The translations under genes were made by a program, and so were the position numbers. This document shows, piece after piece, positions 795-55,035 of a stretch of DNA of 64,000 bases. Position 1 is the first letter of the stretch. Each line of letters begins with the position of its first letter. A model generated the notes under the pieces. That model searched no databases and was not told the origin of the DNA. It saw only the letters and a list, made by a program, of their open reading frames with translations. The stretch lies in NCBI GenBank assembly GCA_965112155.1, contig OZ218098.1. One strand, given 5' to 3'. The DNA comes from Podarcis liolepis. Lineage: Eukaryota.

Positions 795-15785
<14,991 letters not shown>

Positions 15786-17157
15786 CCAAGCAACGAGAAC
15801 TACTGAGCAGCTGACAGTGACAACAGCAAATCCTGCAAGGATGTGGCTTCGAAGCCAAAAAGGCAGCAGCTGCCACCTCTGCTGTTAGATTTCTGAACCT
15901 CCTCTGTATGGCATAAAGGGGGAAATGCTCAGGCACCCAAAGCACACAGATGATCCACCAAGTTAGCAGTGAAGCCATGGAGACCAAACTAGAGGAAGAC
16001 TTCAGGCTGCGTACGGTTCCCAGCATGCAGTTCTTCATGAGCAGGACCTGCACGTAGTGCTAGAGCAACTTCAGAGTATATTCTCCAAGCTACTGCCAGC
16101 ATTCCTGGGAAAGCTGTTGCTTGGTGATCCAGGTGTATTATCAGGGAATTGTGAAAGGGGTGGGGGGTGGGGGGAGGCAGGGACCAGGGCTGCCTTGCCT
16201 CACTGTTCTCCCCAGCAAAATGCCTTCCCTTGCAAAGATGAATGGAGTGTGGAGGTGGGGGGCATGCGTGAACATTTGCCAGCACTTTGTATACAACCAC
16301 AGAGGGAGAAGCCTGCAGAATGGCTGTGTGTGTGTTTTTGTAAGTTCTGATTTTGAGGTGTCCCGTTTTAATTTTCATAAACTCGAAAAAGTGTTTTCAG
16401 ATCCCTGGATCCCGTTTCTAGTTTTGCCTGCGGGGGAGAAGGATTCGAAAAGGATTAGGGTAACCCCATGACCCCCCTCCAGATGTTGGCAGACTACAAC
16501 TCCCATCATCCTTATTGGGCCAAGCTGGGAGCTTGGAGTCATGCTGACAACAACAGGTTCCCTATCTCAAAGGAGTTTTGGCTGGCAGGCAAATGGGATG
16601 GAGACCCTTCTCACTTCTGCACAACGGAGAGCACAGAGAGAAAGTGCTTCTCAAATGGGTCTGGTTTACTTGGATCCCTTGACTACAAGGACATGGAAAA
16701 ACAAGAGGGGACCTGGAGTCACGGAGACAGGGTAGAAAGGAAGAGCAGGGCACAGAAAAATAATAAGAAACGCCTCTCTATCGCCTACCCAGGCCAGGTA
16801 GCTGCTTTTCTGTTTGGTGGCTCTATGGAGGCTGCTTTCAGAAGGACCTAAATGGTTCCTACTGTAAAGCTATTCAGCTCCAGGCAGTCTTGGGTTGTGT
16901 GGGCAAGTGATGGTGGCCCTGGCCAAGACTCTGGAAATTCTGCCCCTAGATCTTTAGACAGAACTATCCATGGGCCTAGCGCTGGAGAGAGTAACAGACA
17001 CAGAGGGGAAAAGGAGCCAATCCCTAGTTCTGATCAGTTTCAGCTTTATCTTTGCAGCGTCAGACATGAGTTTGTTGCCTTACTGCTTCTAACTCCAAGA
17101 AGGCACCACAACAAGTTAAAACAGCAACTGAAGGAGGAAGCCAAGAACAGTGGCCCT

Positions 17158-17163
17158 TTTATT
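17158..17163 (-). promoter_or_regulatory. Probable polyadenylation signal (AATAAA) of the novel gene
   Basis: TTTATT on + strand about 540 nt downstream of the TGA, followed by U/GU-rich sequence on the - strand. Confidence 0.55.
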
Positions 17164-17702
17164 GAAGGGGCTGGTTGTTTTACAGCACATTCCCCATTCC
17201 CACAATCTCTCTCAGCAGAGGGTGCTTTAGGGTTTACATGCAAGAGTTCTTCAACTTTAGCTCCCAAGTGAAAGAGGGGGGGGGAGGAAACTGCCATATT
17301 TCGGGGGGGGGGGTTGTACAGCACAGTGTCTGCATTAGGGGAGCTGCTGTTCCCCACTTGCTCTTCCCATATTTCTGTGGTGCTCTGACTTACTAGTCTA
17401 GCAATGATTGTCACCCTACTGCTTCCGTCCGCATGCTTGGCCATATCTGAAGATGCCAGAATAGGCTTGGCTATATATATATTTATATATGTGTGTGTGT
17501 ACCTGGCTTCTTTTAGCTCTGGCTGCCGGAAGCGGCTTTTGAGGGTCCTGTGCGGCAGTTTGCACAGCAACAATCCTGTCTGTTAGCTGTCGCTAACGCC
17601 ACCCATGTCCTCCGAAGCCAAGAAGAACCTCATGGGGGGTGGGGGAAGGGTCAGTGGGGCTCCAGTCTTGAGGAAAGTCCCAAGGCAGCACCCCGCTGAG
17701 GC

Positions 17703-17900
17703 TCAGTCGTCGTCCTGTTGCAGCTGCTGGTGCCTACTCTGGTACCACAACATGGTAGGAAGGTTCTGGCAGCCTTGGTAGCGGCGCTGGCGCTCCTCTT
17801 CCCCCAGGGGTGGCACAGAGTGGCAGGGCGCCCCTGCCAATGAGACGTTGAGCAGCTGGGCTGGGGTGCCCGAGCCAAAGACTGCAGACCATGGACCCAC
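17703..17900 (-). CDS. Novel gene exon 7, terminal (VGPWSAVF...LAGAPC...YQGCQNLPTMLWY...DDD*)
   Basis: gcag acceptor; TGA at 17705-17703. Confidence 0.83.
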   Translation of the reverse strand: MGPWSAVFGSGTPAQLLNVSLAGAPCHSVPPLGEEERQRRYQGCQNLPTMLWYQSRHQQLQQDDD

Positions 17901-20900
17901 CTGCAAGGAACGAGAGAGATTGCTTCACTTAAGGTTGCCCTGGGCCACAACTCAATCCGTCGTCAGCATTAATGCTGATATAGCACTTCCAAAGCATCAG
18001 TGTTTCAGGTACATTATCTCAGTATCTTATACAATCGGCCTGTAAGGATGGCCAGGAAAGCAAACTGAATTAAGCCTGCCTGGCTGGCTTCCACATGCTC
18101 TAAAAATGGTAAGTTTCAGTGACTTCCTTTATTTGTTGCATCCAACCCTGTGCCATCACTTGGAATTAACCAATTTAGCCTGGATCCATTGCACTTGATT
18201 AAAAAAAATCAGTTCAAACTACCTTGAATGTACACACCTTTTTTCCTTTTAATGGCAATGGTCTGTTTTTGAGCAGTAAAACTAATTGGGATGTAACAAA
18301 ACACACATTTTTCTTTCCAAAGGTGCCATATTGCACATCAAAAGACTCCTTTAGTCCAAGCTACCTTCCACAAACTTCAGATGTCATTCTCTAATTGTCA
18401 TCCCAGATGGCCTGTGTGTCAGTTACATGAGCAAAGGTTGGCTCTGGCCATTTGCCAAGTTCTAGTTTTCAGCATTGCTGCCTCTACACCTAAGCATTTA
18501 TTTCTCAGTCTGCCGTGCTGCCCAATTGATTCCCAACTCTTTCCCTACACACAGAGGAGAAACCAAACTGGTTGCAAGATGGTGCATAAGATGACTTGGC
18601 CTTACCAGGAGCCTTGATCTGCCCTGAACTTGCTGGACAGCTCAGGCCAGTTTTCATCTATGTTAATTGGCCAAGCACCAATGTCCCTACTCCCCTCTCC
18701 CCTCCCCTGGAACTGGGAGTAGAGCCCAGGGAGTGCTGCCACCCAGTTAGTGATGCTGCCACTAGAAGCGGCCACTTTGAACTGGAGAGACACCTGTTGC
18801 TAATGCCACCTGCCAAAAACCAATTTGAGGACGGGCTTTCTAGTCACTATTTTGAGCCTCCTGGTATTATGTCCAGAACTAACATCTCTTGAGGGACCAT
18901 AAATTGATGGCAGAGCATATGCATGCAGAAGGTACCAGGTTCGAAACCCAGTGTCCCCAGTTAAAAGGACCTGACAGCAGGCAACATGAAACCTGAGAGC
19001 CACTGCCAGAGTAGACAACATTGGACAATTAGCCTGACTCCATATGTTCCTATGCTCTGCAAACACCAAGCCTTGGACTCCGAACAATCACAGCCCACCT
19101 TCCTTCCATGGCACTTACCGGCAACAAATGCTGGAGGAGGCACTGGTCGGGCTGCAGTCCGGCCCAGAACTCGGCAAAAGCCGACCCACCGCTGGCGGTA
19201 GTGGTGGCAGTGGCAGTGGTGGTGCTACGTATGAGCACCACATTGGGATGGCGCCGTGATGCCCGTAGCTTCTTCGTCAGTGGCCCCGGATAGCTCTGGT
19301 CAAGGAAGAGGAGAACCCGGCGAGCATTGCAGCTCTCCAAGTCTGCTAGCAGCTCCGAGATGGGGTACCGCTCCTTAGGATCTGCCTGTTGCAGGGAAGG
19401 GACAGCTCATCAGCACCTGCCCCTTGGTCACTGACACACATGCACACCCCTCCCCGCTCCACAGTTGGGAGATCAAGGGGATTCCACTGCCTGGGAGTTA
19501 AAAGGAGCGGATTAAATGGGGAAGAGCAAGACAGGGCGAGCACCCACTGCAAAGGCCGGTGTTGTTTTCTCCCTGCAGGCACACATGAAAGAGCTGGACG
19601 GCCCTTTGAAGGGAACAGAGGAGAGGAGAGGGCTGCAGCCTCCACCTGCAGTTCTGTCAACATCTCTCCTTCCTCCAGTCGGGCTTCCCAGGACATGCTG
19701 GGACAGGTGGGATGACCTCCTCCTCCTCCACCACCCAACTGCCAAAAGTGGCTCACTTCACTTTCCATTTCCAGCCTAGGAAACCCCAAAGGAAACTTGG
19801 CAAATGGCCAAATGCAGGCCTTTGAGAAGGGATGGTGCCGCTTTGTATGTGTGCACAAGCATCTTAGGCAGCCGCCCCACATTTCCCTGCCCCAGTTGGG
19901 TTCACTTGGCACCCCGACTTCACTGCTCCCTGCCAGCAATTGATCATGGCTTACCCCCATGTGATAAATGCATGAGTGAAAGTCTCCTTTATATCGTTAG
20001 CATTCCCATTCCCTGCTCGGCTAAGCAGGTTACATTAGCATCAATAGCCAAGATCCTTTTCGGGATGTAGCATGATGAAGTAGGATTCATTCATTTAACG
20101 AGGTGCATATACCGCTTGACTGCTGTAAAACCTCCAAGCGGTTTTACTTGTAAGTTAACCTGCTGCTGCTGCTGCTTGCTTCATTCTGCACCAACCTGTA
20201 GCTTTTCCCAACAAGCAACATTCATCAGTGCTTGGCTGACCACTGGGTAGGTGGCCTGTGGCTGTGGCTATTGTCACGGATTCAAAATTCTAACTTTTTA
20301 AAAGTGAGGAGCAATGAAGAACACCATGACGGGTTTCCTATTGGATTTCTATGGGTCAGCGTATGGCTGTCTCAATCCACCTGGAGACAATTCCTGGGCA
20401 GAGCCACAGACTCCTTGACAAAATAATATATTGAATAGCATTGCTCATGGGGACTAATTTAGACCATTTCCTCGATGTATTTCTCCCTCTGATCTCTCTC
20501 TGCCTCTGCCTAACTTACCTGGTGGGTTACTCCCCCCAATAAATTGGCAAGAGATGTGCCCCAAGAGATGATATCCCGGCTGTGAAATAAGCAGCACCAC
20601 TTTGTAACTTGTGCGGTTCTGTATTTCTTGTGCCCCCACACATTAATTCACATGTAGAGGTTGTGCACCAGAGGGGGTGGGGGTGGGAGGGAGAGAGGGA
20701 AGAGGCACATACCCTTCTCTCCTCCTACAGTGATGTCATACCTGGATCCATCATGCCACCCCACCATCCTCTGATAATACACACCCCATCCATCCTTAAG
20801 CTCTGGAGGGTTTTGGCTACACATGCAAAATTCCAGTAGGAGAGGGTTGATATCAATAGTGGAGACAGAGGATGGGATAGAACCTTCCTCCTATCATAGC

Positions 20901-22470
20901 TAAGGCCAAAGGGCTAAAAAAACTGGACCATTCCCATCATACCTCAACAATGATGATAGATCAGCTTGGCTTGGCAATTTAAAAAAAAATCCTCAAAGAA
21001 AGAAAACAGCAGCAGGTTCATTTTGTCTCCTACACCCTTTTGAAATGTGGCTCTTTTGGGGGAGGTGTTATTAGGTTATTGTACTTATTTTGATTTTATA
21101 TACTGTGATCTTTTCTGTGAACCACCCTGAGACCTCCGGGTATAGGGTGGTATATAAATTCAATCAATCAATCATTCAATCAAAAAATGGCTTGTGATGT
21201 TTCGTAAAGAGAGTACAGACACTAGGACAACCAATGTTGGCAGCTCCATGGGCAAGTGCTGCCCTGCTCCTCCTAGACAGCCTCTCCCTGGCTTCCAGCC
21301 CTGACCCCCCACTTACAATGCCATTACGGTTGGCATCCCACAGCAGCATGGTGCCATCGCTGGCTGCTGGGCTGTTGAGGTAGAGCACCAGCGAGTCGGC
21401 GCAGTGGAGGCTCCTGCAGACCAGAGCCAGGTGGGAGCGAATGGCCAGCTTCTCAGTGGCTGGGTGCACGTCGCCCATCTCCACAGTCACTGTCCGGAAA
21501 AGAAGAGGGAGAGAGGGATCTGCTAATCCCGTGCCCCAAAGGCCTGTCTCCTCCCTCCAACCCACTCTAGTCTTGTACACCAAAGCAGCAGTCCCCCCCC
21601 CCCAGACCACCCAAAAACCATTGGTCTTGACACACCACTTAATGTTTTTTTCTGCCTGTTGTACCAATTGGAATACACCATGCTAGATGCTGCCTGATTT
21701 TTCAAGCTGTATTCCGAGTCCTTCTTATATGTTGCATTTTATTGTGTTCTGTCAATTCAAACTGTAATGTAATAAAATGCAAGGAAAGAAAAACGAAGAA
21801 GCATTAAAATACAATTGAGTATTTAATGCGAACCACCTGAAAGAAGCTTGACCACAGTTTGGGAACACCTTCCCTGTGGCATCCTCATTCCTCCAACCAC
21901 CACTTGCTCCCTGCCACCACATCCTGCTCATCTGGGAAGGGGCCAGAGTTGGGAGCAGCATGGGAATATTTACTAGGCTCTCTCATTAGCCCACTCTGCA
22001 AAATGCCCCACAGGTGGTTTGGTCCATGCCGTGCAGGCCTGTAATTTTTGCAGGGACATGTAACGCAAAGGCGAGATTTCGCCAGGGCTAGATGCATTCA
22101 CACCCAGCATTTTCTCAAGTGGGATGGACAAGTAGGGGGACACTCTGAAATGCAATACACCCCCCCCCCATGCAGAACCTTGGTGGCAGGGAGAAGGAAG
22201 TGCCAGGAACAGAGTCTTGCCTCTGAAGAGCAGCTCATGGCGTCCCGACACCCCTGAGTAGGGCTGGGGGGATATACTGATACATCAACCAAAACCAGTT
22301 TCTAGGCCACATTGTGCTAAATGTTTCAAAATCAATGACCCGGCAATATATCGTGAATCACGTGTGTGTGCGCGCGCGCGCATTATGCAAAAATCACAAT
22401 TTTGGGGAAAACAGGAAACTACCCAGTGCTTCTGTGTCTCCCTGAGTTGAATGAGCAGATGCTCTTCCCT

Positions 22471-22544
<74 letters not shown>

Positions 22545-25500
22545 TGTGTGCGCACCTGCGCCTGGAAGCAGCCAGCAGAAAGCACGGTTTTGTGAAGCTA
22601 GCTGATGCTGAAATTTAAGGAAGTCCCTCCAGCTCACGTGAGCAGGAGTGGCATGGGGACTTGCTCAGCTGTAGGGCCGGGCAAAGTATATCAACTGCTT
22701 CTTTCTCCCCTCCTTATCTCCTCCTCCCTTCTTATTTTAGACATCATGATATATCAGTCTATCACAATATTTAGCTGGCGCTTTATCACAATGTTGAAAA
22801 CCAGATTATTGCCCAGCCCTACCTATGGGCACTGAAAAGTCACCCACCCCCCTAAGGAAACCAAGAGCCCCGTCCCACCCTTGCAGCCGACAGCTAGCTC
22901 TCTTTTGTACTGGTACCTGAGGCCTGCCCCTCGCTCGCGAAGAAGGCCTTGATGTGCTCTTGGCGGAAGCCGTTCCGTCGAAGCATCTGGTAGAAGAGCA
23001 GCAGGTTCTGCGCATGGTGGGGGTAGGTGACCTGCTCCTGCCAGCCACCTGGGAGAGAAGCACGGTAAGCAATCCAGGGGGGAAAACATGGTGGAAGAGA
23101 GGCTGAAGCTGGTTGCAAGGGGCATAGGAGCACTAACACTGCCCCTCAAGGAGACAAGGGGCTCATGCCCAGTAGAACAAAGCTGTAGCTCAGTAGCAGA
23201 GCATATACTTGCACACAGAAAGAGCCGGGTTCAATCCCCGGCATCTCCAGATAAGGTTGGGCATGTCCACTGTCTGAAGCCTTGGAGAGCCACTGCCAAT
23301 CAGAGTGGCCAATACTCAGCTAGGTGGACCAATGAGCTGACGCACCACAAGGCTGAGCCTTCACTCAGATTCACCCTCATCCATCCGCTGGCCAAATGCA
23401 GTGCAAGCACTGCAAGCCAAATTCACTGGCTTGCAGTGGTGTGTGGTCAGTGGACTGGGGCACTAGGCTAGTCCCCTAAATGTCCCCGCTAAATTAGAAT
23501 ATTGAAGTATTAAAGCCTGGTGCCTCCTTCCCAAAGCCCAGGAAGCTTCTGCCAGCTTAGGGATGGAGGCGCGATGCTCCGACCAGGCCCAAGAGTCCTT
23601 CCACCACCTTCCCAAAGCCCACCTGGCCTGGGAAGCTTCAGCCCAGCTTAGGGAGGGACCAGTGAAAAAAAAGACAGTCATGGAACCAAGAAATTACCGT
23701 GAAAATCCCTCAATTAAACAAGAACTCGAGTTTTGTAGCCGGCATCTCGTTAAGTTCTTGTTCAATTCCAGTTTATTTTTTGATTTTTGTTATTCTATAG
23801 TCGATTACTTCTCGTTTCAAGGATTTTCATGGTAAATTCTTTTGTTCTGTGTAACAGCTTAGGGAGGGAGGCTCGATGCTCTCTCACACACAATGTCGCC
23901 CCCTCCCTCAATCGCCCTCACAAGCTTGTGCCTCTGGCCCTAACTGTTACCCTAAGAAAAAAATCACCTCACACCACTGATGGCTTCTGATTCCCAGAAC
24001 CAGCAGCTCCCTGCAGCCCCCAGGCACCACTTCTCACCTGCAATCAGCACTGCGTGGTCACACGTCTGGTACATGCGGCAAGACTTGTACAACGGAAGCT
24101 GCTGCCGGTGGCATCGCCGCGTGTTCTTGTTGAGTTCGCAGTAAGCGGCCGTGGAGCTGGAGCTCGCAAGGGGCAGGGGCTCCGGGCAGGGGCTGTATCC
24201 ACGGAGATCTGGGAAAGAAAAGGAAGTGTAGTAGGACGGCAGGAGGGGAAAGAATCTCAGGTCCAACAGACCCAGACAGACACCTGAACTCTCATGGGGG
24301 CCCCTTCGCAACGAGGTCTGGATAACCACTGTTATCATCTTCAAAGGGGTTGTTCCACAACAGATCACCACACCTTTACAACATCTGAGCTACGGACTCT
24401 CAGACCTTGGGATTATTGAAATATAGACAACAAAAAATGAATCCACTCATATGGGGTCTAAGAGACCCATTATTTTTTTAAGCGATGGGGACGGAAGTTA
24501 CTTCTGGGGCGCTGCCAGGATTCGGGGCCCTGAAGCTCAAACTTCATTTGTTTCAAAGTAGATCCACCTCTGGACACAGGAAATAAGAAAATGATTGGTG
24601 AGTCGAGGTGCCCTAGGCCAAGGGCAAACTTGGGACAATGAAGTTCCAGTTCTATGGTGCTCCCTTCCAGCTGAGATTCCAACACCTATTGAAGACCTTT
24701 TCTGTTTCAGCAGGCACTTTAAGAAAGTTTTCTGCTTTTTTACAGTTTTAACTGATTAGTGTATCTTTTTAACCTTACTGTACACTGCTTATGGACTAAG
24801 GTGTTAAGCGGTATATAAACTGTTGAAATAAATAAATAAATAAAAAGGTGGTCACATTGTTCTCCCCCTTCCCATTTTGTCTTCACAACCAGGTAGGTTA
24901 GGCTGAGAGACAGTGACTGGCCCAAGGTCACCCTATGAGCTTCAAGGCTGAGTGGGGATTTGAACCTCAGTCTCCCAGGTCCTAACCACGCAATCTAACC
25001 ACTGCACAAGACTGTCATCTACCTGCTGCATCCCCTCTTCCTCCACTGCCCACTTACCAAGCTTTGGACTTCCTAAATCCTGAAAGTGGGGGAGTCTCCT
25101 TTGTGGTTTACAATCCTGATCCTGTAACCCCGCCCCCCTCCACCCCACTGCCCATCCAATCCAGGGACTTACCCACGCAGTTCAGCCTTTGCAGGTGCTT
25201 GGGGTCCTGTGCCACCACTACCATGGGCAAGAAATGGATCTCACAGAGACCGACGGGGGGCTCCTCGCGGCGGATACGTCCCACAGACCGCTGGCTCCTT
25301 CCCTTGCCACGGCCCGGTCGGCGCTTCAGCTGGTTCTCACAGCGGCTCCTCTGGGCTGGAATCAAGCATTCGTAGCCGCCTGCAGGCAAAGAACAAACAT
25401 GTCCAGAATAAAACCTACTGAGAAAGTTCCCTATACAGGGCTGCCTTCAGGTGTCTTCTAAAAGTCAGATTGTTGTTTATTTCCTTGACATCGTTCCACA

Positions 25501-28500
25501 GGGCAGGTGCAACTACCGAGAAGGCCCTCTGCATGGTTCCCTGTAGCTTCACTTCTTGCAATGAGGGAACCGCCAGAAGGCCCTCGGAGCCGGACCTCAG
25601 TGTCTGGGTTGAATGATGGGGGCGGAGACGCTCCTTCAGGTATACTGGACCAAGGGTGTTTAGGGCTTTAAAGGTCAGCATCAAGACTTCGAATTGTGCT
25701 CAGAAATGTACCAGGAGCCAATGGAGGTCTTTCAGAACCAGTGTTAAATGGCCTGGTGGCCACTCCCAGTCACTAATCTGACAGCCGCATTCTGGATTAG
25801 TTGTAGTTTCCCAGTCACCTTCAAAGGTAGCCCTGCGCAGAGTGCATTGCCGTAGTCCAAGTGGGAGATAACCAGAGCATGTACCACTCTGGCGAGACAG
25901 TGCACAGGCAGGCAGGGTCTCAGCTGGCATACCAGATGGAGCTGGTAGAAAGCTACCCTGGACACAGAATAATATATTGTTATATATACATTAATATTAT
26001 TTTATTTTAGTGCATGGTTTAATTTTCTTAATTTCTCCATGGGACAAGCAGAGTTTAGAAAGGTTCCAACAAATTAGTAGATTCTGTGGAACAGGTGATG
26101 GGAATGAATCTTTGCTTCAGTTGTGATTGATGAGCAGTTTATAGAGCATTCATGTGCAACACCCTCAACCCTGTGGAAAGACCAGAGAAAATATACATCT
26201 TGTTTTTCTTTATTTTGTCTCATTATATACTGTTTATGACCACTTGCCTCCTGTTTTGCTGGGGGTTCACAATATTTTTTGCATTCTTGTTTGTATATAT
26301 TATCTAAAACTTCAATAAAAATATTAAAACAACAAGCCATAATCACCTGTGCATACTACATCTCTACTGAAAACTCTGCAGAACCAAGTCAGAATCTTGT
26401 CTCCCCAAGCAGAATAAAAGAGGATTTCCTCCTAGAGGTGTAAAGTATGGGGTATAAAACTCCCTCCAAAAATGGAGAGGATAAGAAAGGAGTCGGTTGC
26501 CAGTTAGGCTGCAGTGCTTGGCCAATTAATTCACAAGGCTGATGGATTAAAACACATTTCTGATAGGCTAAAAAAAGGACTCCATGATTAATCACACTAA
26601 AAAAAAGTTAATCATTTTAAAATAATGAAGGTTAATTATTTTTAAAAGAAAGAAGATGCATTTCTCCTCTGTTGTCTCAGCCACATGAGTGAAAATATCT
26701 TCTAATATGGGACTTGCAATATACAATAATGCACATAAATATATTTCTTTTTAAGGATGCTTTCCCTGCTTTCAGAATTTTTTTATTTCCTCATTTACAT
26801 AGAACAAATCAATTAATTAACTAAGCATGTCTAACTAAACTACTATGTCTACTCGGAAGCAAATCATATGGAATTCAATGGAGTTTACTCCCAGGTGAGA
26901 CGGTTTTGGATTAGAACAACAATCCTACTTTTCAACGTCGGCAAGAAAGACTGATGTGAAGGAAACGCTCCCTGGGCTCAGATAAACTGTGGTTTTCAGC
27001 GCCAAAGAGCAAGGAATTCTTGCACAATGTAATGCTTTCTCCCTCTCCTCCCCTTTGCACACCCCCTAAATCTGTTCTGGGTGTTCCCCTCAACCCTCTG
27101 GATCAGATTTGGGGATGGCACAGCGGGGCGGGAATCCTATTGCACTAGCACAAGTATTTGGCTGATTTCTGCCTGTCACATATCTTATATCACAGATTCG
27201 GGGATTCCTGTGTTCAAAGGGCTAAACCCTGATTCATACTAAGCCCTGAAAGACACCCTGAGTATTAGCCCATCAATGACAGTCATGCCGAGAGAGATTC
27301 CACCCAACTGAGCCTCCCACCTGTCACCCTTTGCACTGCAGCACCTTCTAACTTTCCTGTACCAAACTCTTCCTCTGATGTAGGGGTGTAAGGCTGTAGG
27401 GATGGAGTTTTCCCCAGCGCGTCCCAGGATCAGGAGGGAACTGGAGATGCCCCTCCAGCAGTAGATCCTCTCTCTTGGCTATCCCAAATTCTCCAAGTAA
27501 CCCCTGCCGGCTGGTCTCAGGATGCCACTGCATACAGGACTGACACAAACACTGAGCTAGGGACAGCGTCACATACAACTCATTGATGGAAAGCAGACAC
27601 TGTTGGGGCCCCGACAGTCCCAACTGCACTTGCCAATTGCAGTTATAAAAGCATGTGTGTGGAAGGCAGAGGAGATGAGAACAGGAGCATATGTGAAAGG
27701 AGGACGCTGGAGAAGCCAGGCAGCCTTCCTTCCAGATTTCACTGGCTCATAGGATCAGAGGGAACCCAAAGACCAGTCCATAGTAAGCAGGTGCTACTCA
27801 CATCTCACACCAAACCCTCTACCCTGCTTTTAGCTCCTACCATGGAAATCAGTGTCTGGCAAAGAGGAAGAGCCAGGATTACTGCAGAGCAGGCAACTAG
27901 ATCCCTCGAGCAACCGAGACAAGTCACAAGGTGGAGACCCCAAATCACTCCTCAGTCTTATCTGGGAGGACATCATCTTGCAACCCCAAACATTGCGTAA
28001 CGTCTCTCCCTCTGCCATACCTGAAGTATCATCCATCAGCTGATTTTCTTGAAAAGACATATCTATTGGCTCAAGCTTTTCCTGAATCCCTGATTCTATA
28101 ATAACTGTTTTCCTGGGTTGCTGTTTTTTTAATGTTCTATCTGTTTTTAGGACACTGTCTAATTTTCTATTTTGTGGATTTCTGTACACTGTTTAGAGGT
28201 TTTTAAATATTAAGCAGCCTAGAAATGCTTTTAATCAATCAATCAATCAATCAATCAAATATAAAAACTGCTTTTAATTAATTCCAGATTAGCCCATCCT
28301 CAGTGGAAAATTTATTGGACAGTTTATCTCCAGCCCCAACATTCTCTTCCCTGTCTTTTAAGATACTGGGGCAAAGGGCACTCTGCCCCAAGCGATGCTG
28401 AAAAAGAAGCTACAAAATATCTGAAGAGGTGATCCAGTGCGTGAGGAAGAACACCAGGAGGAGGATTAAGGTGCATAAACACAGTCAGTAATTTTCGTGA

Positions 28501-29452
28501 GAAAAGCATGTCCCGAGGATAAGGCGGGTCACAGGGTGCAGCAGTTGGGATACTGAATCTTGGGGAAGGGTAGGTGCAAGTGCCTGTTTTGTAAACCAGA
28601 GCGGCACTGGGCCTCAGATATGACTAGATATCTAACCGCTGTACAACGTTTATTTAAACCACCTTATTTTATGCCGGATCATCTGATGTGGACGCCTTTA
28701 CAGCGCAGATCAGATGCTGGGGGCGGTTCTGCATATGCGTTCTGCATATGCTTAGGATCAGGCTCCTCTGTAGATTGCTCCTTGTAGTTTAGGGTTGAAA
28801 TGCGGGCAGATTTGAGCACAAATGCCAGATCTGATCTGGGTCCTGGCACCATGGAACAGGAGGAAATAGGAAGCCTGGGGTGGGATGGGCGCAAGCCAAT
28901 ATGTTCTCTGCTGGGAGTGGTCGCCCACGGGGCGCGCGTGGCCTGAGGATGCGGCATTCACTCACCCACGTAGAGGCTGTCGCGACTCCGGCACCGGCGC
29001 GGGCTGACGTTGAAGTCGACATAGAAGAGCAGGAGCGGGTGGCCGAAGTTGGCGCCCGGGGTGGGGTCCAGCACGAGGATGGCGTCTTGCGCGGAGGGCG
29101 CGCCGGTGGGGCGCAGCGGGCTGCCGCTCTGGTTGCGGCCGGCCACGAAGGGCGGAGCGCCGGGCCTGTCTCCCCAGCCGTCGGGCAGCAGCGCCCGCAC
29201 CTTGTGGCCCGGGCGGGCGGGCTCGGAGACATAGACGGCGGGCCCGGGCCCCTGGGAAAGGCGCGCCAGGCGCTGGCACTGCGGCCGCGGCAAGAGCCCG
29301 CCGCGCTCGGGACACTGCGCCGCCGCCACGTGCCGAAGCGCCGCCGCCGCCCAGCGCGCCACCCGCGCCTCGGAGAAGCGGTTCCCCGACGGGGCGGCCG
29401 CGCACGGCCAAGCGAGGGAGGCAGCGGCCAGCGCCAACAGCAGCGGGGCCAT
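17703..29452 (-). CDS. Uncharacterised secreted 544-aa protein with Cys-rich N-terminal region and degenerate C13/legumain-like (clan CD) peptidase domain; 7 exons
   Basis: Exons (- strand) 29452-28966, 25379-25173, 24208-24038, 23048-22917, 21489-21317, 19385-19119, 17900-17703. All introns GT-AG, phases 1,1,1,1,0,0; total 1635 nt = 544 aa + TGA, with no internal stop. Strong Kozak gccgccccATGG in a CpG island; signal peptide MAPLLLALAAASLAWPCAAA; AATAAA about 540 nt after the stop. Confidence 0.88.
19119..19385 (-). CDS. Novel gene exon 6 (ADPKERYPISELLADLESCNARRVLLFLDQSYPG...QCLLQHLLP)
   Basis: acag/gtaagt; 267 nt, phase 0-0. Confidence 0.85.
21317..21489 (-). CDS. Novel gene exon 5 (VTVEMGDVHPATEK...DSLVLYLNSPAASDGTMLLWDANRNGI)
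   Basis: acag/gtaagt; 173 nt, phase 1-0. Confidence 0.86.
22476..22550. repeat. (CT)n(GT)n compound microsatellite
   Basis: direct reading. Confidence 0.9.
22917..23048 (-). CDS. Novel gene exon 4 (GGWQEQVTYPHHAQNLLLFYQMLRRNGFRQEHIKAFFASEGQAS)
   Basis: ccag/gtacca; 132 nt; C13-like first helix. Confidence 0.86.
23180..23350 (+). mobile_element. tRNA-derived SINE (Squam3-like); related copies at ~12755-12880, ~18900-19040, ~40400-40570 (-), ~43560-43700 (-)
   Basis: A-box TAGCTCAGTAG, B-box GGTTCAATCCC, followed by a non-tRNA body. Confidence 0.65.
24038..24208 (-). CDS. Novel gene exon 3 (DLRGYSPCP...CELNKNTRRC...CRMYQTCDHAVLIA)
   Basis: ccag/gtgaga; 171 nt, phase 1-1. Confidence 0.86.
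24860..25010 (-). mobile_element. MIR-like / L2-tailed SINE fragment
   Basis: GTGACTGGCCCAAGGTCAC..GGATTTGAACC core. Confidence 0.55.
25173..25379 (-). CDS. Novel gene exon 2 (GYECLIPAQRSRCENQLKRR...RIRREE...LQRLNCV)
   Basis: gcag/gtaagt; 207 nt, phase 1-1. Confidence 0.83.
25424..25966 (-). mobile_element. L2/CR1-group LINE 3' fragment (degenerate RT C-terminus)
   Basis: Frameshifted peptides ARVVHALVISHLDYGNAL, LQLIQNAAVRLVTG, LKDLHWL, RAFSVVAPALWN. Confidence 0.8.
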
Positions 29453-29820
29453 GGGGCGGCTGGAGCCCTCGCCGTGCGCCCCGCAGCAGCTCCGCGCGCT
29501 CTGCCCGGCCAGCGGGGCTCCGAGTCCCCGCCCTGCCCCGACAGGAGGAGGAGGAGAGACGGAGGTGGCTGCGGGTGGGGGGGAGCCAAGGACTGCGTCC
29601 CTCCCAGCCCCGCGTCCCCTTTTGCTGCTTCCTGGGCAGCTCCTATTGCCCCACCCTGCTGCCCCTGCTGCTTCTCTCCGACGGGGCGGCTCGTTCCTCT
29701 CCCGGCGCCCTCGTCTGCTGTCCACACGGAGAACGACAAGAATCCACCAGGACAGATTTAGACCCCCCCCCCCAGTTGGGCGCCTGCGGGTCAAGAGGAA
29801 GGAGGCAACGCGAGGAAAGG
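28900..29820. promoter_or_regulatory. CpG island over the promoter and first exon of the novel gene
   Basis: Very high GC and CpG density; GC-box-like element near 29527. Confidence 0.8.
28966..29452 (-). CDS. Novel gene exon 1 (signal peptide ... DPTPGANFGHPLLLFYVDFNV...DSLYV)
   Basis: ATG at 29452; donor gtgagt; GC-rich open frame. Confidence 0.85.
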
Positions 29821-30899
29821 CATAGTTATTTTTCAGATTTCTAAACTGCCCAGCCCTGAAAAATGTACAGCAACAATGAAGAAAAGGACCTCCAAACATG
29901 TGGAGAGTGTGTTTGTCATCATTAACCATCGGTAGGACATGGATGGACACCCAGGAGAGTTATCCAGGTCGACCTCTCCCCACACAAAAAGGAGAGTCGA
30001 TGTCTTACGCAACAATTCGCACCTGGCCCGTTGAATTTTCGAGGGTTTATATCTGAGTAGAAGTGGTAAGGCTTGGGCTGTTAGTGTGGCTTTCCTGTTT
30101 CCCGTTCCAATTAATGGAAACATCGTTCCAAGGGGCACAGAACTCTTGAGCATAAGCTCAGTGCGAAGACTGTCTCCAGCTCACACCCGGAGGGGCGAGA
30201 CCCGTGTTACTAACTTCCCTCATATTAAACCTGAATTGAAATAATCCACGTTCACAGCCGGTATATATTGAACACTGCGCTTCTGAAGGCAACAACGGCC
30301 TCTTTCATGAATGAATGAAGGTGAGCATGACTTGGACGGAGGCGCGCCCTGTGCTGGGGAAAACCGAATTATTTGGGTTGCCGAAAGAGCTCTCCCGACT
30401 TCATCCCCCGACGCTGAACTGTTCCGTACATTGCCCGGTCCCTCTCTCGCTGTTATTGCAGCCCGTGGCCCGACGGGGCGGGAAGAAGGCGGCTGCCCCA
30501 GAGTGCGCGTGCGCACTCGTGTTTTTGTTATCTGCAGGCTTAATTGGGAGCTGCTGCTGCGGCTGCCTAAGAGCGTCATGCGCCGACCTGGACTCCCTAC
30601 GATGGCAGCAATAGAGCCCTCCCCTCGGTTGCAGGCCCCACGTTGGACGCCTTCTGACCCGAGTGCAAACCCACGCGTGTTTACTCGGAAGTAAGTCCCA
30701 CTGTGTCCCAAAGAACATCAGTGTGGCAGATAGGGCCGGCCGTGGGGCCAGAGTCCAATGCTCTGAAGCTTGAGGGGAGGGAGGACAAATGACCATCCCA
30801 AGAGTGGCAGATGGGGGAGCGTCAAATAGGCCTGGCATCAGCATCTTGGACGGAAAGGAGCACGATGGAGCCCAACAGGACTCATGCTGGTTATACTCT

Positions 30900-35685: not shown

Positions 35686-38600
35686 CTAGGAGGACACAAA
35701 TATGCTGAGGGTAAGAACAGCCAGAGAGGGCAGCACATCCTTCCCTCCCTGCCCAACGAGACCGGACTGGCCATTTTCTACCAGAAGAACCTTACACCAC
35801 CCCACCTGCACAAAGCACACTGCTTTACATTCTATGATTATATATAAAATGATGGTGGAGGGCATTATTCTCACTCCTGTTTTGTTTTAAGCTGTGAAAT
35901 CACATTGTCTAAAACAATACAAATAAACCAAACTTGTATGGCTATACTTATTGATGATATTATTTCTAATATAGATATTAAATGGTTATACTTAATTGTT
36001 CACTTGATATTTTGTGAACTGCTTTGGGCACCGTTTTGAGGGCAAGTGGCATAAAAGCAAGTGGATGACGACAATATATTGCAAGGAGAGAGGGAAAGGG
36101 CCTTTGTTCTGTAATCCCAACCTGCAAACAGGACTGGTGGCCAAGGGTTAGATTTAAATCTATGTGAAAAAATCTGCAGTGCACAAGTCTGCCTGACCTT
36201 TTGGGATACCTGCTTCTCCCCAAGCTGGGCAGGAAGATTCAGTGTAGATAGTTAACCTACTCCTCCCTGCAACTAAAAGCATTTACCAAACCTAGGAGCA
36301 TCCAGCCTCCAGAGTTCCATATACAATAAAAGCTGATAGGAAAAGACCCTAAAGGCAGCTGATCTGATTTGGGCTCTAGTTGGCTGGTTTGGCTTTGGAC
36401 TTCCTTGATGAGATTGTCCTCTTTTACTCACAAGGAAGCCTTGGTAGACTGGCAGAGTCTATGTGCAGGAGGAGGATCAGAAGCGACTTTGTGGGAATCG
36501 CCTCATCTTGCTCACCTGTTGTTGTTGCTGCTGCTGCCGCCGGTATTCCTCCTCGCTGGCCGACAGGGCCCGAGCCAGTGCAAGGTCTTCCTCTTCCTGG
36601 GCGCTGTTTGAGACACAGGACTGGATGAGTCAGGCATGCTGCACAATTAAGAATCTGTACCCCCAGCAACTTCCTGGCACATTCCTCCCGAGATAGGGGA
36701 GCGATTTATTTTAACAAAAACTTGCATTCCATTTAAATCATAAAAACCTCCAAGCAGAGGTCAGTATGTTGGTGTGCACATAGTGATCTCACCACATTTA
36801 GATCTGTATTTAATGCTTTGAGGGCCTAAGCAGCACAGACGTCTATGCTCTGCCTCCACAGCTGCAGGCAGTAATGCTACTCAATACCACTTACTGGAAA
36901 CCACAGGAGGAGAGTGGGGTCAAGCTCGGGTCCTGCCTGCCAGTTTCCCACAGACATCTGCTGGACTAGATGGGCCAGTGGCCTGATCCAGCAGGCTCTC
37001 CTTATACTCGGAGGACTGGAACTGATGTGAACAGTCCTCTGGTTACATGAATGTTAACACAGCCTTTTCCGCCCCCCACTCCGTTCTCTGCCAGAGCGTC
37101 TCCCATATATGCAGACTCCAAGCAGGCAGCCTGGCACAGTGGCGCCAGTGAGATCTTGAAGCCAGCTGATCTCTGCAGGGCTGGCGCAACCGTGCTGTAC
37201 CTGCGGGGTTGTGGTTGGGTGGGCACTGCCTCTGCTAGGGACATCTCCAAGGCTCGCTGCAGCGCTTCCTCCTCACTCTGAAACACAAAAGCAGATTCAG
37301 CCTGCCGTGGAGGAGGCTAACAGCCCCAGCAACTTGTAGCTTATTGGTACAGGGCAAAGCATATGCCAAGACCAAACTAAGCCTCCTGATGTACCGTATT
37401 TTTTGCTCTATAAGACTCACTTTTTCCCTCCTAAAAAGTAAGGGGAAATGTGTGTGCGTCTTATGGAGCGAATGCAGGCTGCACAGCTATCCCAGAAGCC
37501 AGAACAGCAAGAGGGATTGCTGCTTTCCCTGCGCAGCGATCCCTCTTGCTGTTCTGGCTTCTGAGATTCAGAATATTTTTTTTCTTGTTTTCCTCCTCCA
37601 AAAACTAGGTGCGTCTTGTGGTCTGGTGCATCTTATAGGGCGAAAAATACGGTATATTGTACCCACGAGGCATAGTTTGGTCAGAATTCAGTATACACTT
37701 CCAGAGTTAACACTAAAAACATTACTTCTGGTGAATGAGCCAACACAGCCCCTAGGGGGCCATGAACATTTGTGCCCCAGACTTTTTAGACTCATCTACC
37801 CATATACTACCAAACCAAAGGGACACATTGGTTGCAAGGTGTGAATTTTCTTTCAGCTCTTCTACCCCACTGTGGAGGTTTTCACTAGAGGGAGTTTGGG
37901 TGGGGGGACAGGAATTTTTACCAGCTTTCCCCTTTCCCTTGCAGTCACCAATACTGTCTTTCCAACCCTCTGGAGCAGACTTTCTCGAGGCCTAGGGGAA
38001 AGGAAGAACTGCAGAAAATCACCTCCCCCACTTCTGCCCTTGGGTGCATCCAGTTAGCAGAGTGCCACAGTGGACAAATCTGGACCCAGCCCACCCTGTC
38101 CCACCACAGCGACCACTCACAGATGCATATTAAACAAAGGACATGAAGCGATATGTCCACTTGTAAGCTGAGACGAGGCTTACAAGTGAAGGCACCCACA
38201 AGATAATACATTATTTCTCTCTCTGTTTCCTGGCTTCTTGGTTTCATTTGTAATTCAGCTTAAGATTTTTGTTCTCACTTTTGAAGCTCTTACTTATTTG
38301 CCTCTCCTCCTGATCTGTCCTTGGTTCCCCACTGGATTCCATTCTGAACACTTATACACGACTCTTCTCCTTGTTACACCCAGGATTTCTTGTCCCAACT
38401 ACCACCACCCTTTCTCTCTGGCTTCTTTTTAACACTAGAACATTTCCCCCCTGCAAATATTCACAGTTTGTTGTTTCTTTACAAACAGTAACTTCTTAAA
38501 ATGCATTTCCCCTGTTTCTGCCTGTCAGCTCCACCCCACCCTGCATTTGGGTCCTTTTAAACCTATTTGATTTCTAATATTTCTAGGTTTATATTCAGAA

Positions 38601-41214
38601 AAAAACAACCCATTTGTGTAACTGACAATGCTGTATATATATCAGAAGTAAGCACCATCAATTTCAATGAGGATTATTCTCAGTGGGTCTAGGATTGCAG
38701 TCTTTAAACTGTTTTCAGATTACTGTCTTAAACCAGGAAACACACAACTTTGTATTTCTGTCTTATTCCCATTTTTTCCTGCTTAAGACTGCAAGCAGTT
38801 TTGCAAGCCATTTGTTTTCTCTCATGTAAATAACCCAGTATATTCTGGAATGAGATCCTAACAACATATATCCGCTTTGCAGCCATTTACCTGGAGTGTG
38901 GCATATGTGCAATGGAAAAGGCAACAGCCTGTGTTTAATGGTGTAAATGCCCAGTTTGTTGGCCAGGACTTACCAATCCATTCTGCAGGGCAACCACCGG
39001 AGGAGATATGCTTTGTGGCGGAGGAGGTGCTCTTGCCATCTCACTGGCTCTGTGTGCAAAAAAAGATGTCAACTGTCACTACTTGTGAGGCATGTAAGAT
39101 GGAGAGGGAAAATCCCCAGGGATAATCCACCAGGGTGCCTTGGAACGTAACCCCTGCGTCCATTGGGAGTTGCCTGTGCAATGCTTCCTGAAGCTGTACG
39201 GTAGGCTTAGAAGAAAGGGTAGGGGACAACGCAGACTCGGGCAGTTATTGTACCTGCTGGAGGTTGGCAGAGCTGCAGCAGCTCTCGTGGCTCCGTTGCT
39301 GGGTGTAGTGCTTGTAGGTGCTTTGGCAGGTTTTTGAGCTCTGGCGATCGCAGCACTCCTGAAACGGGAAACGCAACTCTTGGTAAAAGGAGCACCTCTC
39401 TCGGCATTGCAGCAAGCCCTTCCCCCTTCCCTTGAGACTAGCAAGAATCCACTCCAGCACTATCCTTTCAGGGACAATGTGAACTGTTGACCATCAACAT
39501 CTGGAGGGCCACAGGCCCCCAACTCGTGTGCTGGAACAACCAAGGATGGGGAGGAAACCACTGTCTCCTGAAGAATGCACACCAGCATTACTGCATGGCT
39601 GCAGGCGTGTGTCTGGCACATGCCAACCGTTTTGCCCAGGCCAGCCCTCTGTCCCGCCTTTACCCTGCCTTGGAGAGGGAATGCCCAGGGCCAGCGCAGT
39701 CATGATCCAGTGGGTGTCGGTGCTTGAGGCAGAAGTTGCCGTGGCACTGGTCACACAGAACCTTCATCATCTCCCGTTGCTTGCAGCCAGACCTCTGACA
39801 CTTGTTGGTAAAGATCTAGGCAGATGGACACAGTTGTGATTCAAGACAGTTGGGGGGGGGGAAGGAAGGCACCCAGGACACAGCTGCTTTCTAAATGCAT
39901 GCAAGAGACCTTTGCTCGTTGCAAAGTGACCTCTCTGGGGCACAAGCCTGGGCAGTGTGCATGGAGGTCCTGGACTGCCCAAATGACAAGGAAATGCCGA
40001 ACTGCAAGCCTCTAACCAATGAGAAGTTACATCCGAATTACGGTAATCCCCAAGAATTGGCCTCCAGATGCTGCTGGACTACAACTCCCATCATTCCTGA
40101 CCATGGCCATGTTGGCTGGGGTTGATGGGAGTTGCAGTCCAACAATATTTAGAGGACCACACATTTCCTCCACCCCTGTTTTGAAGCTTGCTCTTCTAAC
40201 TTGTCTGGCCCCAATTTGGCTTGTAGCTAGTCTGAACTCTGCAGCCAGACTAAACTCACTAGTGCTACTCAATTTGGATGTACAGCTCGTCCGTTATCCC
40301 AGCCCTTCAGATACCCTCCAGAGAAAGACCCACAGAAACCCCAAGCTGTGGGTTGCTCACAGTTCTGCCATTGAAAGGACCCCTAACCATCTGGACCACA
40401 CTGCATAGGAACATAGCAAGCTGTGTTATATCAAGATGATTGGTCCATCTAGCTGATTGACTGGCAAAGACTCTGCAGGGTTTGGGACAGGGGTCTCTCC
40501 CAGCCTGACCTGGAAATTACAGGTACTTTTTTGTAAGAAAACACACTCTATCACTGAATAATGGCCCCAAACCTGCTTGTGGAACCCAGAGTCTGCTGAG
40601 ACACACAATCCAGAGCACAGGGCATATCAGATTTTGTGTGTGTATATGTTTAAATATTAATTTATAAGGAAATTATATTTCTATATGCATAGAAAAACAC
40701 AAAATTAGGGTTGCATCCAACTGTTGTATGTCTACCTATCTGATTCTGATGGACTTAAAGCAACGTGTCCCACAAGAGGCAGCAGAGAGGACGGGTGCAG
40801 CCTCTTACCTTGCGCTTGCGCTGAGCTGGGTCCGATTTGCAGTCCTGGTCAATGTGTGCTCCCACCACAATGTCAGGCATCTCTCCCCGCTTGACAGGGA
40901 TCGGGATGCTGCAGAGTGGGCACACGGGGACCTGCACATCCTGGGGACAGAACAGACAGAAAGCAGGTTACACAATGGCCCCTGGCCCACTCAGTATGAG
41001 AGCATACTAGATGCTGCAGGGTCTCCTCATCTCCTAAGGTGTGCTCCTGTTCGTGGTTCCAGAGGGCCATGACTTCCAAGAAGAGTATTCTGTTCTCCAT
41101 CCGCCCCACTCCCCAATCTCCATGTTTATTTTCTAACTGACATTCAAAATTCTGTATCTACTGAGCAGGTGCAGTTTTCACTGGCTGTTTGGGGAGATTC
41201 TTTAGCCCATTGGG

Positions 41215-46265: not shown

Positions 46266-47039
46266 GGCGCTGCAACGGGGCTGGAGTCAGCGAGGGATGA
46301 GGGGCAATAATCCTACCTGCTGGGGAAAAAACAGGGTTAGAAACTGCGGGATCAGAGCACAGGAGGGAGTTGTCACCAAAGGAGGGAGGAGATGCCGCAG
46401 CACCCACGGGGGCAGAGTGAGAAGAAAGAGGAGGAGGAGCTGCAGCACCCATGGGTGCTTCAGCAGCTAACGAAGGGGCGCGAGGCATAGCACCCAAACG
46501 GTGTGGAAAGAGAAGGGAGAGCAGCATTGTCGGCTAAAGATAAGCCACACAGCAGGAAGGAGGAAAAATAACCCATGAAGAAAACAGGAGAAAGCAGGGA
46601 GGGGGACAGATCAGTACCAAAAACAGCAGGTAGACTCCGCCTTCTCTGCTGCAAACAAGGAAACCTTGGCTCTTCCCACCCCACCCACTTCCGCTCCTAG
46701 GTTCGGTGACGTCATTTTGCAAGGCCCATATGGCCATGCTATGGACATTCGAGAAATTCAATCAGACATTCCTTGTCACTAGCCTCGCCCCGCCCCCCGC
46801 CCCCGGGAAGGAGCCCCGTTTGCCTTAGCACCGTGGAATGTTGGGAAATGTAGTAGAACGCTGGATGCGCTTCCAGGAGCCGGAGCCGCCTTCTACTCGC
46901 CTAGAAGTGGAATGGCGCGGTGTATGATGGTAGCTGAAGTCACGCGTTGCGTAGTTCCCGCTTTTTCCTTATGCCGGGCAGTTCCGTCAGCGTCCCTCAT
47001 ACGCTTGAGTGAGGGGAGTGGGGCGGGGTGCGCTTGAAG

Positions 47040-47149
47040 CCGCCGCACGCGGCATTCTGGTCCCGCCTTGGCCGGAAGTGTCTCTATGGTGACGGCGGGA
47101 GGTTCGGGTTGGGCTAGAGGGGGCCAAGCCACCGCCCGCCCCGGAGCCG
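47040..47149 (+). other. TTLL4: Probable non-coding first exon of TTLL4 (5' boundary uncertain)
   Basis: Consensus donor GTAAGT at 47150 in the CpG island; an acceptor at 54961 precedes the first coding exon. Confidence 0.55.
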
Positions 47150-54800: not shown

Positions 54801-55035
54801 CTTCTGAAAAATAATAATACAGGTCCTTTGTATGCTGTAATCTGGTCTTTTTCTCAGCCTTGATGGCACTGTCTTTCATTAGTCATCTTACCAACGACAA
54901 CAGAGATTGACTGGAGTGCTTCCTTGGGGCCTCGTAAAGTTCACATGTGTGTTTCTTTCAGGCTGGTCATGGTGAAGATGCCGCTCTGACTCCGGTTCAC
55001 CAGCTGTACTCACTGAGAGTGTGGGATGGCTCTAC

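Follow-up and report, generated by a model that had tools for sequence, protein, structure and literature searches.

An unnamed seven-exon gene of Podarcis liolepis encodes a predicted secreted relative of legumain with a replaced catalytic dyad

The window analysed here, a 64,000-nucleotide (nt) stretch of Podarcis liolepis contig OZ218098.1 (assembly GCA_965112155.1), carries a minus-strand gene between positions 29452 and 17703. An initial annotation, made from the sequence alone, had described it as an uncharacterised gene for a secreted protein with a legumain-like domain of peptidase clan CD. Gene structure, transcription, selection and the distribution of relatives were investigated at the level of the locus, and the fold and candidate active site at the level of the protein. 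The protein was predicted to combine a clan CD fold with loss of the catalytic His-Cys dyad, and our confidence in this part of the explanation is high. In related lizards the gene has already been annotated, as an unnamed LOC locus, and it is hence not itself new.

Gene structure, transcription and family distribution

In the window sequence, seven minus-strand exons (29452..17703) with GT-AG borders and compatible phases add up to 1632 coding nt, corresponding to 544 codons. The coding part of exon 1 (29452..28966, 487 nt) starts at the ATG at 29452 and encodes residues 1-162 plus 1 nt of the next codon, thus ending in phase 1 before the donor GTGAGT at 28965. It includes a signal peptide (about residues 1-20), and all 162 of its 162 residues match the orthologue from Podarcis muralis (LOC114602775, protein P0063, 544 amino acids). 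Exon 2 (25379..25173, 207 nt, phase 1-1, residues 163-232) is bordered by an acceptor consisting of a pyrimidine tract and AG and by the donor GTAAGT; a furin-like R-I-R-R motif lies in the disordered basic loop that it encodes. Exon 3 (24208..24038, 171 nt, phase 1-1, residues 232-289) covers a Cys-rich linker and the first strand of the C13-like domain (C-D-H-A-V-L-I-A), and exon 4 (23048..22917, 132 nt, phase 1-1, residues 289-333) a G-G-W loop and the first helix of that domain. Exon 5 (21489..21317, 173 nt, phase 1-0, residues 333-390) encodes the strand whose counterpart in true C13 enzymes bears the catalytic His, as well as the first half of a calcium-loop motif. The second half of this motif and the strand that bears the catalytic Cys in true C13 enzymes lie in exon 6 (19385..19119, 267 nt, phase 0-0, residues 391-479), together with a Thr/Ala-rich stretch that is specific to lizards. 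The coding part of exon 7 (17900..17703) comprises 195 nt for residues 480-544 and a TGA at 17705-17703.

Two alternative exon borders were rejected. Placement of exon 2 at 27.3-27.7 kb was discarded after a scan for open-frame exons of phase 1-1 returned 25379..25173, which has strong splice sites and agrees with the orthologues. For exon 6, an acceptor at 19375/19374, which would yield a protein of 540 amino acids, was rejected in favour of 19387/19386, based on the pyrimidine tract, the orthologues and an RNA joint 19385|21317.

A CpG-island promoter region (28750..29750, minus strand) spans exon 1 and its upstream flank, with a G+C content of 0.67-0.78 and observed/expected CpG ratios of 0.88-1.01, versus 0.31 for the whole window. 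The start codon lies in the context ccccATGG, with C at -3 and G at +4; this Kozak context, initially described as strong, is only adequate. A probable 3' untranslated region (17702..17140, minus strand) contains the predicted AATAAA at 17163-17158, about 540 nt past the stop codon, and transcript or contig coverage extended from 17100 to 17900. Dinucleotide microsatellites, passed over as repeats in the read mapping, occur in intron 4 (22462-22557, CA/GA runs) and in the 3' untranslated region (17468-17504, TA/CA run).

The in-frame parts of the exons were colinear on P. muralis P0063 (residues 1-162, 164-231, 233-288, 290-332, 334-390, 391-479 and 480-544), with 537 of 540 residues identical, and the split codons 163, 232, 289 and 333 yielded the expected residues. 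The seven-exon, phase-matched model with an uninterrupted 544-codon reading frame was thus borne out by the sequence and by its colinear orthologue. When exon 6 alone was compared with 1.8 billion representative proteins, 55 relatives were found, the best of which was a 544-residue protein from Elgaria (P0001). The cluster of this protein consists of entries of 543-575 residues named "uncharacterized protein LOC...", plus one partial entry of 328 residues, from Podarcis, Lacerta, Zootoca, Elgaria and Rhineura.

Evidence for transcription was sought by mapping reads and contigs to positions 17100-23099; depth was low in the runs sampled. A spliced contig of 928 nt (run X3) joined 22917|21489, 21317|19385 and 19119|17900 and, beyond 23051, carried the letters of the end of exon 3. 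In raw single-cell RNA reads (run X22), the joint of exons 6 and 7 was covered by two reads and that of exons 4 and 5 by one read, while four further reads ran from exon 4 into exon 3. Introns 17901-19118, 19386-21316 and 21490-22916 were accordingly seen spliced in RNA (runs X3 and X22). Of the six junctions proposed initially, four (from exon 3-4 to exon 6-7) were recovered in RNA, while those of exons 1-2 and 2-3 are backed by orthologue colinearity.

In comparisons with related lacertid transcripts, 16 of 18 exonic differences were synonymous third-position changes (P about 2e-6), which indicates that the reading frame is under purifying selection and did not arise by chance. A decaying pseudogene or functionless annotation artefact was favoured by a single observation, the shallow read coverage of the RNA runs sampled. 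This explanation, to which we attach a negligible probability, is refuted by the 544-codon open frame, the spliced transcripts, the predominance of synonymous differences and the conservation of the protein from sea stars to lizards. The gene is real, expressed and selectively constrained.

Two observations on the introns were made in the same mapping. In intron 6 (17901-18131), contigs from runs X1 and X3 extended from exon 7 and could represent unspliced transcripts or DNA, the run types having been guessed. In intron 5 (21100-21299), contig depth in these two runs reached 80-123, with many loose ends at 21106-21164; this is probably a dispersed repeat, unrelated to expression of the gene.

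Identity of the lizard protein to those of other squamates was 81-90%, and to those of turtles 69-70%. Proteins from lungfish, gar, bowfin, many teleosts, sharks and rays were 45-53% identical over most of their length (lizard versus shark or teleost, ~50% over 95% of the length), and invertebrate proteins about 27-37%, also over most of their length. Shark and teleost orthologues bear the name si:ch211-67e16.11, that of the unnamed fish family to which the initial annotation had tentatively and correctly pointed; this family shows full-length colinear similarity to the lizard protein and shares its invariant Cys pattern and motifs. An amphioxus query retrieved, at 33-46% identity, proteins from sea stars, urchins, sea cucumbers, crinoids, hemichordates, nemerteans, annelids and many molluscs, and from a bryozoan, horseshoe crab, spiders, ticks, a millipede, decapods and a mayfly. 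Trichinellid nematodes and a brachiopod also carry a family member.

Every entry listed was "uncharacterized", "hypothetical" or otherwise unnamed. The prediction that no characterised gene, and no named human gene, would correspond to this locus was in agreement with the matches listed and with the literature searched, in which no paper on the gene was found under the identifiers tried, nor any on a legumain pseudoenzyme. No mammal, bird, crocodilian or amphibian was among the matches listed, which is an absence from lists and not proof of loss; orthologues from any of these groups would be expected near the top of the lists because lizard and turtle proteins share 65-70% identity. Likewise, no Drosophila or Caenorhabditis elegans sequence was among the matches listed. 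The lack of a paper on the gene is probably explained by this gap in the usual model organisms. A tilapia cluster (P0186) also carries an entry of the nr database labelled Mustela putorius furo, most likely reflecting fish contamination rather than a mammalian orthologue.

Predicted fold and replacement of the catalytic dyad

Whole-protein analyses (structure model, Pfam scans and alignments) were run on the natural orthologue P. muralis P0063, and the exons of the window were handled singly. The only strongly hydrophobic 19-mer of the protein lies within residues 1-20, with no second hydrophobic segment, and the C-terminus reads ...QQDDD and hence lacks a KDEL sequence. These features match the signal peptide, lack of a transmembrane helix and lack of KDEL noted at the outset. 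The protein has 19 Cys residues, 18 of which are in the mature chain, and three N-glycosylation sequons. The signal peptide, the many cysteines, the sequons and the lack of an anchor or retention signal suggest that the product enters the secretory pathway.

No Pfam family reached its threshold on the lizard protein. Peptidase_C13 (PF01650) was matched by 15 of 31 and 13 of 55 family members in two sets, with a best E-value of 4e-5, all below the gathering score of 22.8 bits. The proposed check against PF01650 therefore gave matches among relatives, but all under the cut-off, and none for the lizard protein itself. No other protease family was matched, and neither C14 nor another clan CD family appeared at E<=1 in either set. 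Single exons compared with Pfam and with the Protein Data Bank (PDB) gave nothing significant, the pieces being too short; the only PDB sequence match of exon 4, to a plant legumain at the equivalent place, had a non-significant E-value of 5.5. Sequence comparison of a Lymnaea homologue with the PDB yielded no legumain match. With a family profile, the sole non-spurious PDB matches were plant legumains and asparaginyl ligases, where the alignment fell on the beginning of the catalytic domain at an E-value of only about 1.3. The top match of this profile, TNFRSF18 (E 0.0046), covered a 33-residue stretch of the N-terminal domain and was taken as spurious. The nearest named Atlas clusters were all Peptidase_C13 (score 0.85-0.87), which was used as a lead only.

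An AlphaFold2 model of P0063, based on a 121-sequence alignment, had a predicted template-modelling score (pTM) of 0.78 and a mean predicted local distance difference test value (pLDDT) of 75.8, with most of residues 271-440 at 82-95. Foldseek searches with this model placed the glycosylphosphatidylinositol transamidase subunit PIGK (GPI8; 7wld_K, E 1.3e-6) and human legumain on top, followed by caspases and metacaspases. In VIA-align, model residues 279-524 superposed on residues 26-288 of human legumain (4n6o_A) with a Z score of 16.4 and a root-mean-square deviation of 3.0 Å, 197 of 263 residues being aligned. Z scores were 16.0 for PIGK (8imx_K), 16.1 for Arabidopsis metacaspase 4, 14.4-16.1 for metacaspases and about 14 for caspase-6. 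Residues ~279-524 are thus firmly predicted, from this model, to adopt the caspase/hemoglobinase fold of clan CD, as had been proposed for the region behind the Cys-rich N-terminal part. Identity in the superpositions with legumain and PIGK was 12-15%, consistent with the earlier statement that the gene is neither LGMN nor PIGK.

Within clan CD, assignment to family C13 is the best-supported option and probable, not proven. A diverged metacaspase- or paracaspase-like domain, or another caspase fold outside the C13 lineage that resembles C13 motifs locally by chance, would account for the Z score of Arabidopsis metacaspase 4, which ties with that of legumain, for the caspase Z scores of 14 and for the sub-threshold level of every Pfam C13 match. 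Such an origin is nevertheless improbable, since no Peptidase_C14 or other clan CD match accompanied the 13-15 members that matched Peptidase_C13 in each set, the PDB matches of the profile were to legumains only, and Foldseek ranked PIGK and legumain first. In addition, the order of motifs appears colinear with that of legumain throughout the domain.

The comparison with known clan CD proteins revealed both shared and distinguishing features. With legumain (MEROPS C13, PF01650), the lizard protein shares an alpha/beta/alpha caspase-hemoglobinase fold of ~200 residues, a colinear series of motifs (first strand and G-W loop, a first helix ending in R-N-G and the two 'catalytic' strands) and a signal peptide, which would imply secretory or endolysosomal routing. 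It differs from legumain in lacking the C-terminal prodomain, for which the family Pfam scans gave no Legum_prodom match, and in adding an N-terminal domain of ~235 residues, a Cys-rich linker and a calcium-loop insert. PIGK, as part of a multi-protein complex, uses a lumenal C13 domain to bind C-terminal signal peptides; the His, Cys and C-terminal membrane anchor that PIGK keeps are all absent from the lizard protein. Caspases and metacaspases (C14) have the same fold (Z 14-16), and metacaspases are calcium-dependent. No member of the lizard family, however, matched Pfam C14, and the dyad of these enzymes is missing as well.

In clan CD enzymes, the catalytic residues occur as His-Gly and Ala-Cys directly after the two central strands of the sheet. 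In the model of the lizard protein, these strands (residues 363-371 and 413-418) are followed by N-S-P-A and D-Q-S-Y. Pro373 (codon 21370..21368, minus strand), two residues past strand 363-371, stands where legumain has its catalytic His, and Ser421, in a D-Q-S-Y-x-G motif after strand 413-418 (codon 19295..19293, minus strand), where it has its catalytic Cys. We take these residues to be the equivalents of legumain His148 and Cys189, by strand position and by colinearity of motifs with the legumain sequence. Relative to legumain, His-Gly has given way to Pro-Ala/Thr and Ala-Cys to Gln-Ser.

Residues were counted in two sets, one of 121 mostly vertebrate sequences and one of 55 sequences spanning bilaterian phyla. 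Pro373 was present in 121/121 and 55/55 sequences. Ser421 was found in 119 of the 121; the set of 55 had 49 Ser, four Asn (spiders and a tick), one Cys and one gap. The sequence with Cys (P0203, MetaClust, taxon unknown) is the only member with Cys at the nucleophile position (D-Q-C-F-S-G), and it keeps Pro at the His position. In the model-based comparison, Pro thus takes the place of the catalytic His without exception, and Ser that of the catalytic Cys in nearly all members. Since both dyad residues are replaced, the domain cannot act as a legumain-type cysteine peptidase, neither cutting nor ligating peptides by the legumain mechanism. With the clan CD fold in the model and His and Cys absent, it qualifies only as a non-peptidase homologue. 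The presence of these replacements throughout the bilaterian sequences places loss of the dyad, as judged from the sequences, before the bilaterian radiation.

Positions conserved in at least 90% of the sequences clustered in C281-D282, G289-G290-W291, P373, D377-G378, the calcium loop, D419/G424 and N438, and Q420, S421, Y422 and H436 were nearly as conserved. They fall in the loops which, along the C-terminal edge of the sheet, form the substrate cleft of all clan CD enzymes. The pattern of conservation suggests that the former active-site cleft is the conserved part of the family.

The Asn/Asp-specific S1 pocket of C13 peptidases involves an Arg-His pair after the first strand and acidic residues close to the Cys strand. 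His300, the putative equivalent of the pocket His, was kept in 112 of the 121 mostly vertebrate sequences but in only 28 of the 55 bilaterian ones. Residue 299 (position 23018, exon 4), presumably corresponding to the S1-pocket Arg44 of legumain, is His in the window, Arg in related lacertid transcripts and most fishes, and Leu in P. muralis. This change is one of only two non-synonymous differences from the lacertid transcripts.

Calcium-loop motif, N-terminal domain and proposed role

Between the two former catalytic strands lies a motif D-x-[DN]-x-[DN]-G-5x-E, which reads D384-A-N-R-N-G-I-A-D-P-K-E395 in the lizard protein and is split by intron 5 (21337..21317 and 19385..19371, minus strand). 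D384 and G389 are invariant; residues 386 and 388 vary only between D and N, and 54 of 55 sequences have E395. These five positions match the pattern of a 12-residue EF-hand loop, in which ligands occupy positions 1, 3, 5, 7, 9 and 12 and Gly position 6, a pattern also shared with DxDxDG loops, and suggest that the protein binds calcium at this conserved loop. The calcium site of metacaspases is built from dispersed Asp residues, whereas the motif of the lizard family is a contiguous 12-residue loop.

The N-terminal half consists of a domain of ~235 residues followed by the Cys-rich linker. Residues 23-278 hold 11 of the 18 mature cysteines, and the disordered basic loop with the furin-like motif extends over residues 184-205. 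This half was modelled from a natural truncated member from Trichuris (P0073, equivalent to residues 5-321) with a 65-sequence alignment; the model had a pTM of 0.74 and several 10-residue blocks with a mean pLDDT of at least 90. Foldseek searches with it gave a best E-value of 0.25, VIA comparison with 48,161 chains a best Z score of 4.3, and Atlas no usable match. Rows for split-barrel proteins (CREG, flavin reductase) and for cystatin- or NTF2-like folds were too weak to use, the helix-on-sheet rows of the latter (Z 3.0-3.6) being far below significance. The N-terminal domain matches no solved fold in these searches and, judging from the model, may be a candidate new fold.

The recurrence of a helix on an antiparallel sheet among these weak rows, including three cystatin-fold chains at Z 3.0-3.6, and the retention of a legumain-like cleft in the dead domain would fit a regulator of the legumain-cystatin system. 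Such a protein could act as a decoy for cystatins or legumain substrates, or could carry a cystatin-like N-terminal domain in its own dead cleft. We regard this idea as very improbable: Z scores of 3.0-4.3 are far below those of chance arrangements, the best Foldseek E-value points the same way, and there is no sequence similarity to cystatins. Moreover, mammals retain legumain and cystatins, yet no mammal was among the family matches listed.

The explanation that we favour, with somewhat better than even confidence, is that the gene encodes a secreted (extracellular or lumenal), calcium-binding pseudopeptidase that holds a ligand in its conserved cleft instead of cutting it. The signal peptide would route the product into the secretory pathway, where no membrane anchor or endoplasmic reticulum retention signal would hold it. 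Calcium would be bound at the conserved loop between the former catalytic strands, and the old substrate cleft would hold a peptide or protein ligand without cleavage, as in other pseudoproteases. For this ligand-binding mechanism, which is argued by analogy, we consider the chances to be evenly balanced. The pseudoproteases iRhoms, Derlins, Clostridioides difficile CspC and cFLIP have in common with the proposed protein a protease fold that remained under selection after catalytic loss, with the substrate site reused for binding. Of these, iRhoms, Derlins and CspC differ in fold and clan, whereas cFLIP has a caspase fold but is intracellular. None is a C13 relative or is secreted with the architecture of the lizard protein, and they are not evidence for the function of the lizard gene.

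Several points weigh against this explanation. The whole-protein work used the P. muralis orthologue and not the joined product of the window itself. Sequence motifs are the sole grounds for predicting secretion and calcium binding, and function is supported by no experiment or paper. In the model, the calcium loop is entered from a strand (380-381), is followed by short helices and is single and unpaired, and it is therefore not a canonical EF-hand; no Pfam EF-hand match was found among the family members scanned. All Peptidase_C13 matches are sub-threshold and metacaspases lie within one Z unit of legumain, so that the C13 assignment is no more than probable. Finally, the nucleophile position carries a highly conserved Ser, with Cys in one member, and the site could therefore be a re-tooled catalytic one.

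The last point leads to an alternative in which the protein is a working enzyme, with Ser421 as nucleophile and another conserved residue as base (e.g., His300, His436 or Asp282), perhaps with activation by calcium of the kind known from metacaspases. Ser421 and the D-Q-S-Y-x-G and N-S-P loops are among the best-conserved parts of the protein, where pure scaffolds often drift; the calcium-loop motif adjoins them, and the calcium-dependent metacaspases are structural neighbours (Z 14.4-16.1). Activity of this kind nevertheless appears unlikely. Every member carries Pro in place of the His, and the Asn that replaces Ser in four chelicerate members would kill a serine nucleophile. In addition, we know of no precedent for a re-tooled serine site in clan CD, which also counts against such an enzyme.

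Two C13 genes, legumain and PIGK, are the usual count for animals. The favoured pseudopeptidase would add a third, far more divergent lineage, whose conservation extends over echinoderms, molluscs and arthropods as well as sharks, teleosts, turtles and lizards. What appears to be new, and is undescribed in the literature searched, is the combination of an ancient, catalytically dead third lineage resembling C13, an inserted calcium loop and an N-terminal domain that could not be recognised. In a more far-reaching and speculative form, which we consider rather doubtful, a third pan-bilaterian C13-like branch would have lost its dyad before the bilaterian radiation and kept its cleft for >550 million years, either for a new calcium-gated chemistry at Ser421 or as a secreted receptor or chaperone of a specific peptide signal, with an unseen fold in its N-terminal half. 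If the cleft does bind a defined ligand, the protein would be the first secreted clan CD pseudopeptidase and a natural example of a legumain cleft that recognises its substrate without turnover. Knock-out and partner searches would be feasible in zebrafish, which carries the gene.

Neighbouring genes and other features of the window

The gene converges, 3' end facing 3' end, with a plus-strand gene for an ABCB6-like ABC transporter, which ends near 15.8 kb. Exons of the latter were located at 9786-15785; a Walker A exon (9786-10094) and a signature-motif exon (13670-14032) both match Pfam ABC_tran, and an acidic repeat tail rich in Glu, Gly and Thr (about 15650-15785) closes the last exon. Upstream of the gene and on the same minus strand, ZFAND2B exons were found at 37179-40880, with a zf-AN1 match at 39663-39815 (E 6.7e-13). 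A 450-residue protein from Phrynosoma platyrhinos (KAH0621227, P0006) fuses ZFAND2B exons with exons 2, 6 and 7 of the gene and additionally matches a short part of exon 4 on the wrong strand. This chimera probably stems from read-through in the annotation.

Further along the plus strand, a 470-codon open exon without a Pfam match (55021-56433) lies ahead of a tubulin-tyrosine-ligase-like exon (62659-62976; Pfam TTL, E 7e-14), which probably belongs to TTLL4. TTLL4 would then be closer to ABCB6 and ZFAND2B here than in human. Additional CpG- or GC-rich stretches without an assigned gene occur at 30000-30750 (observed/expected CpG ratio 0.86-0.87) and at 46000-47700 (G+C content 0.55 at 46-48 kb).

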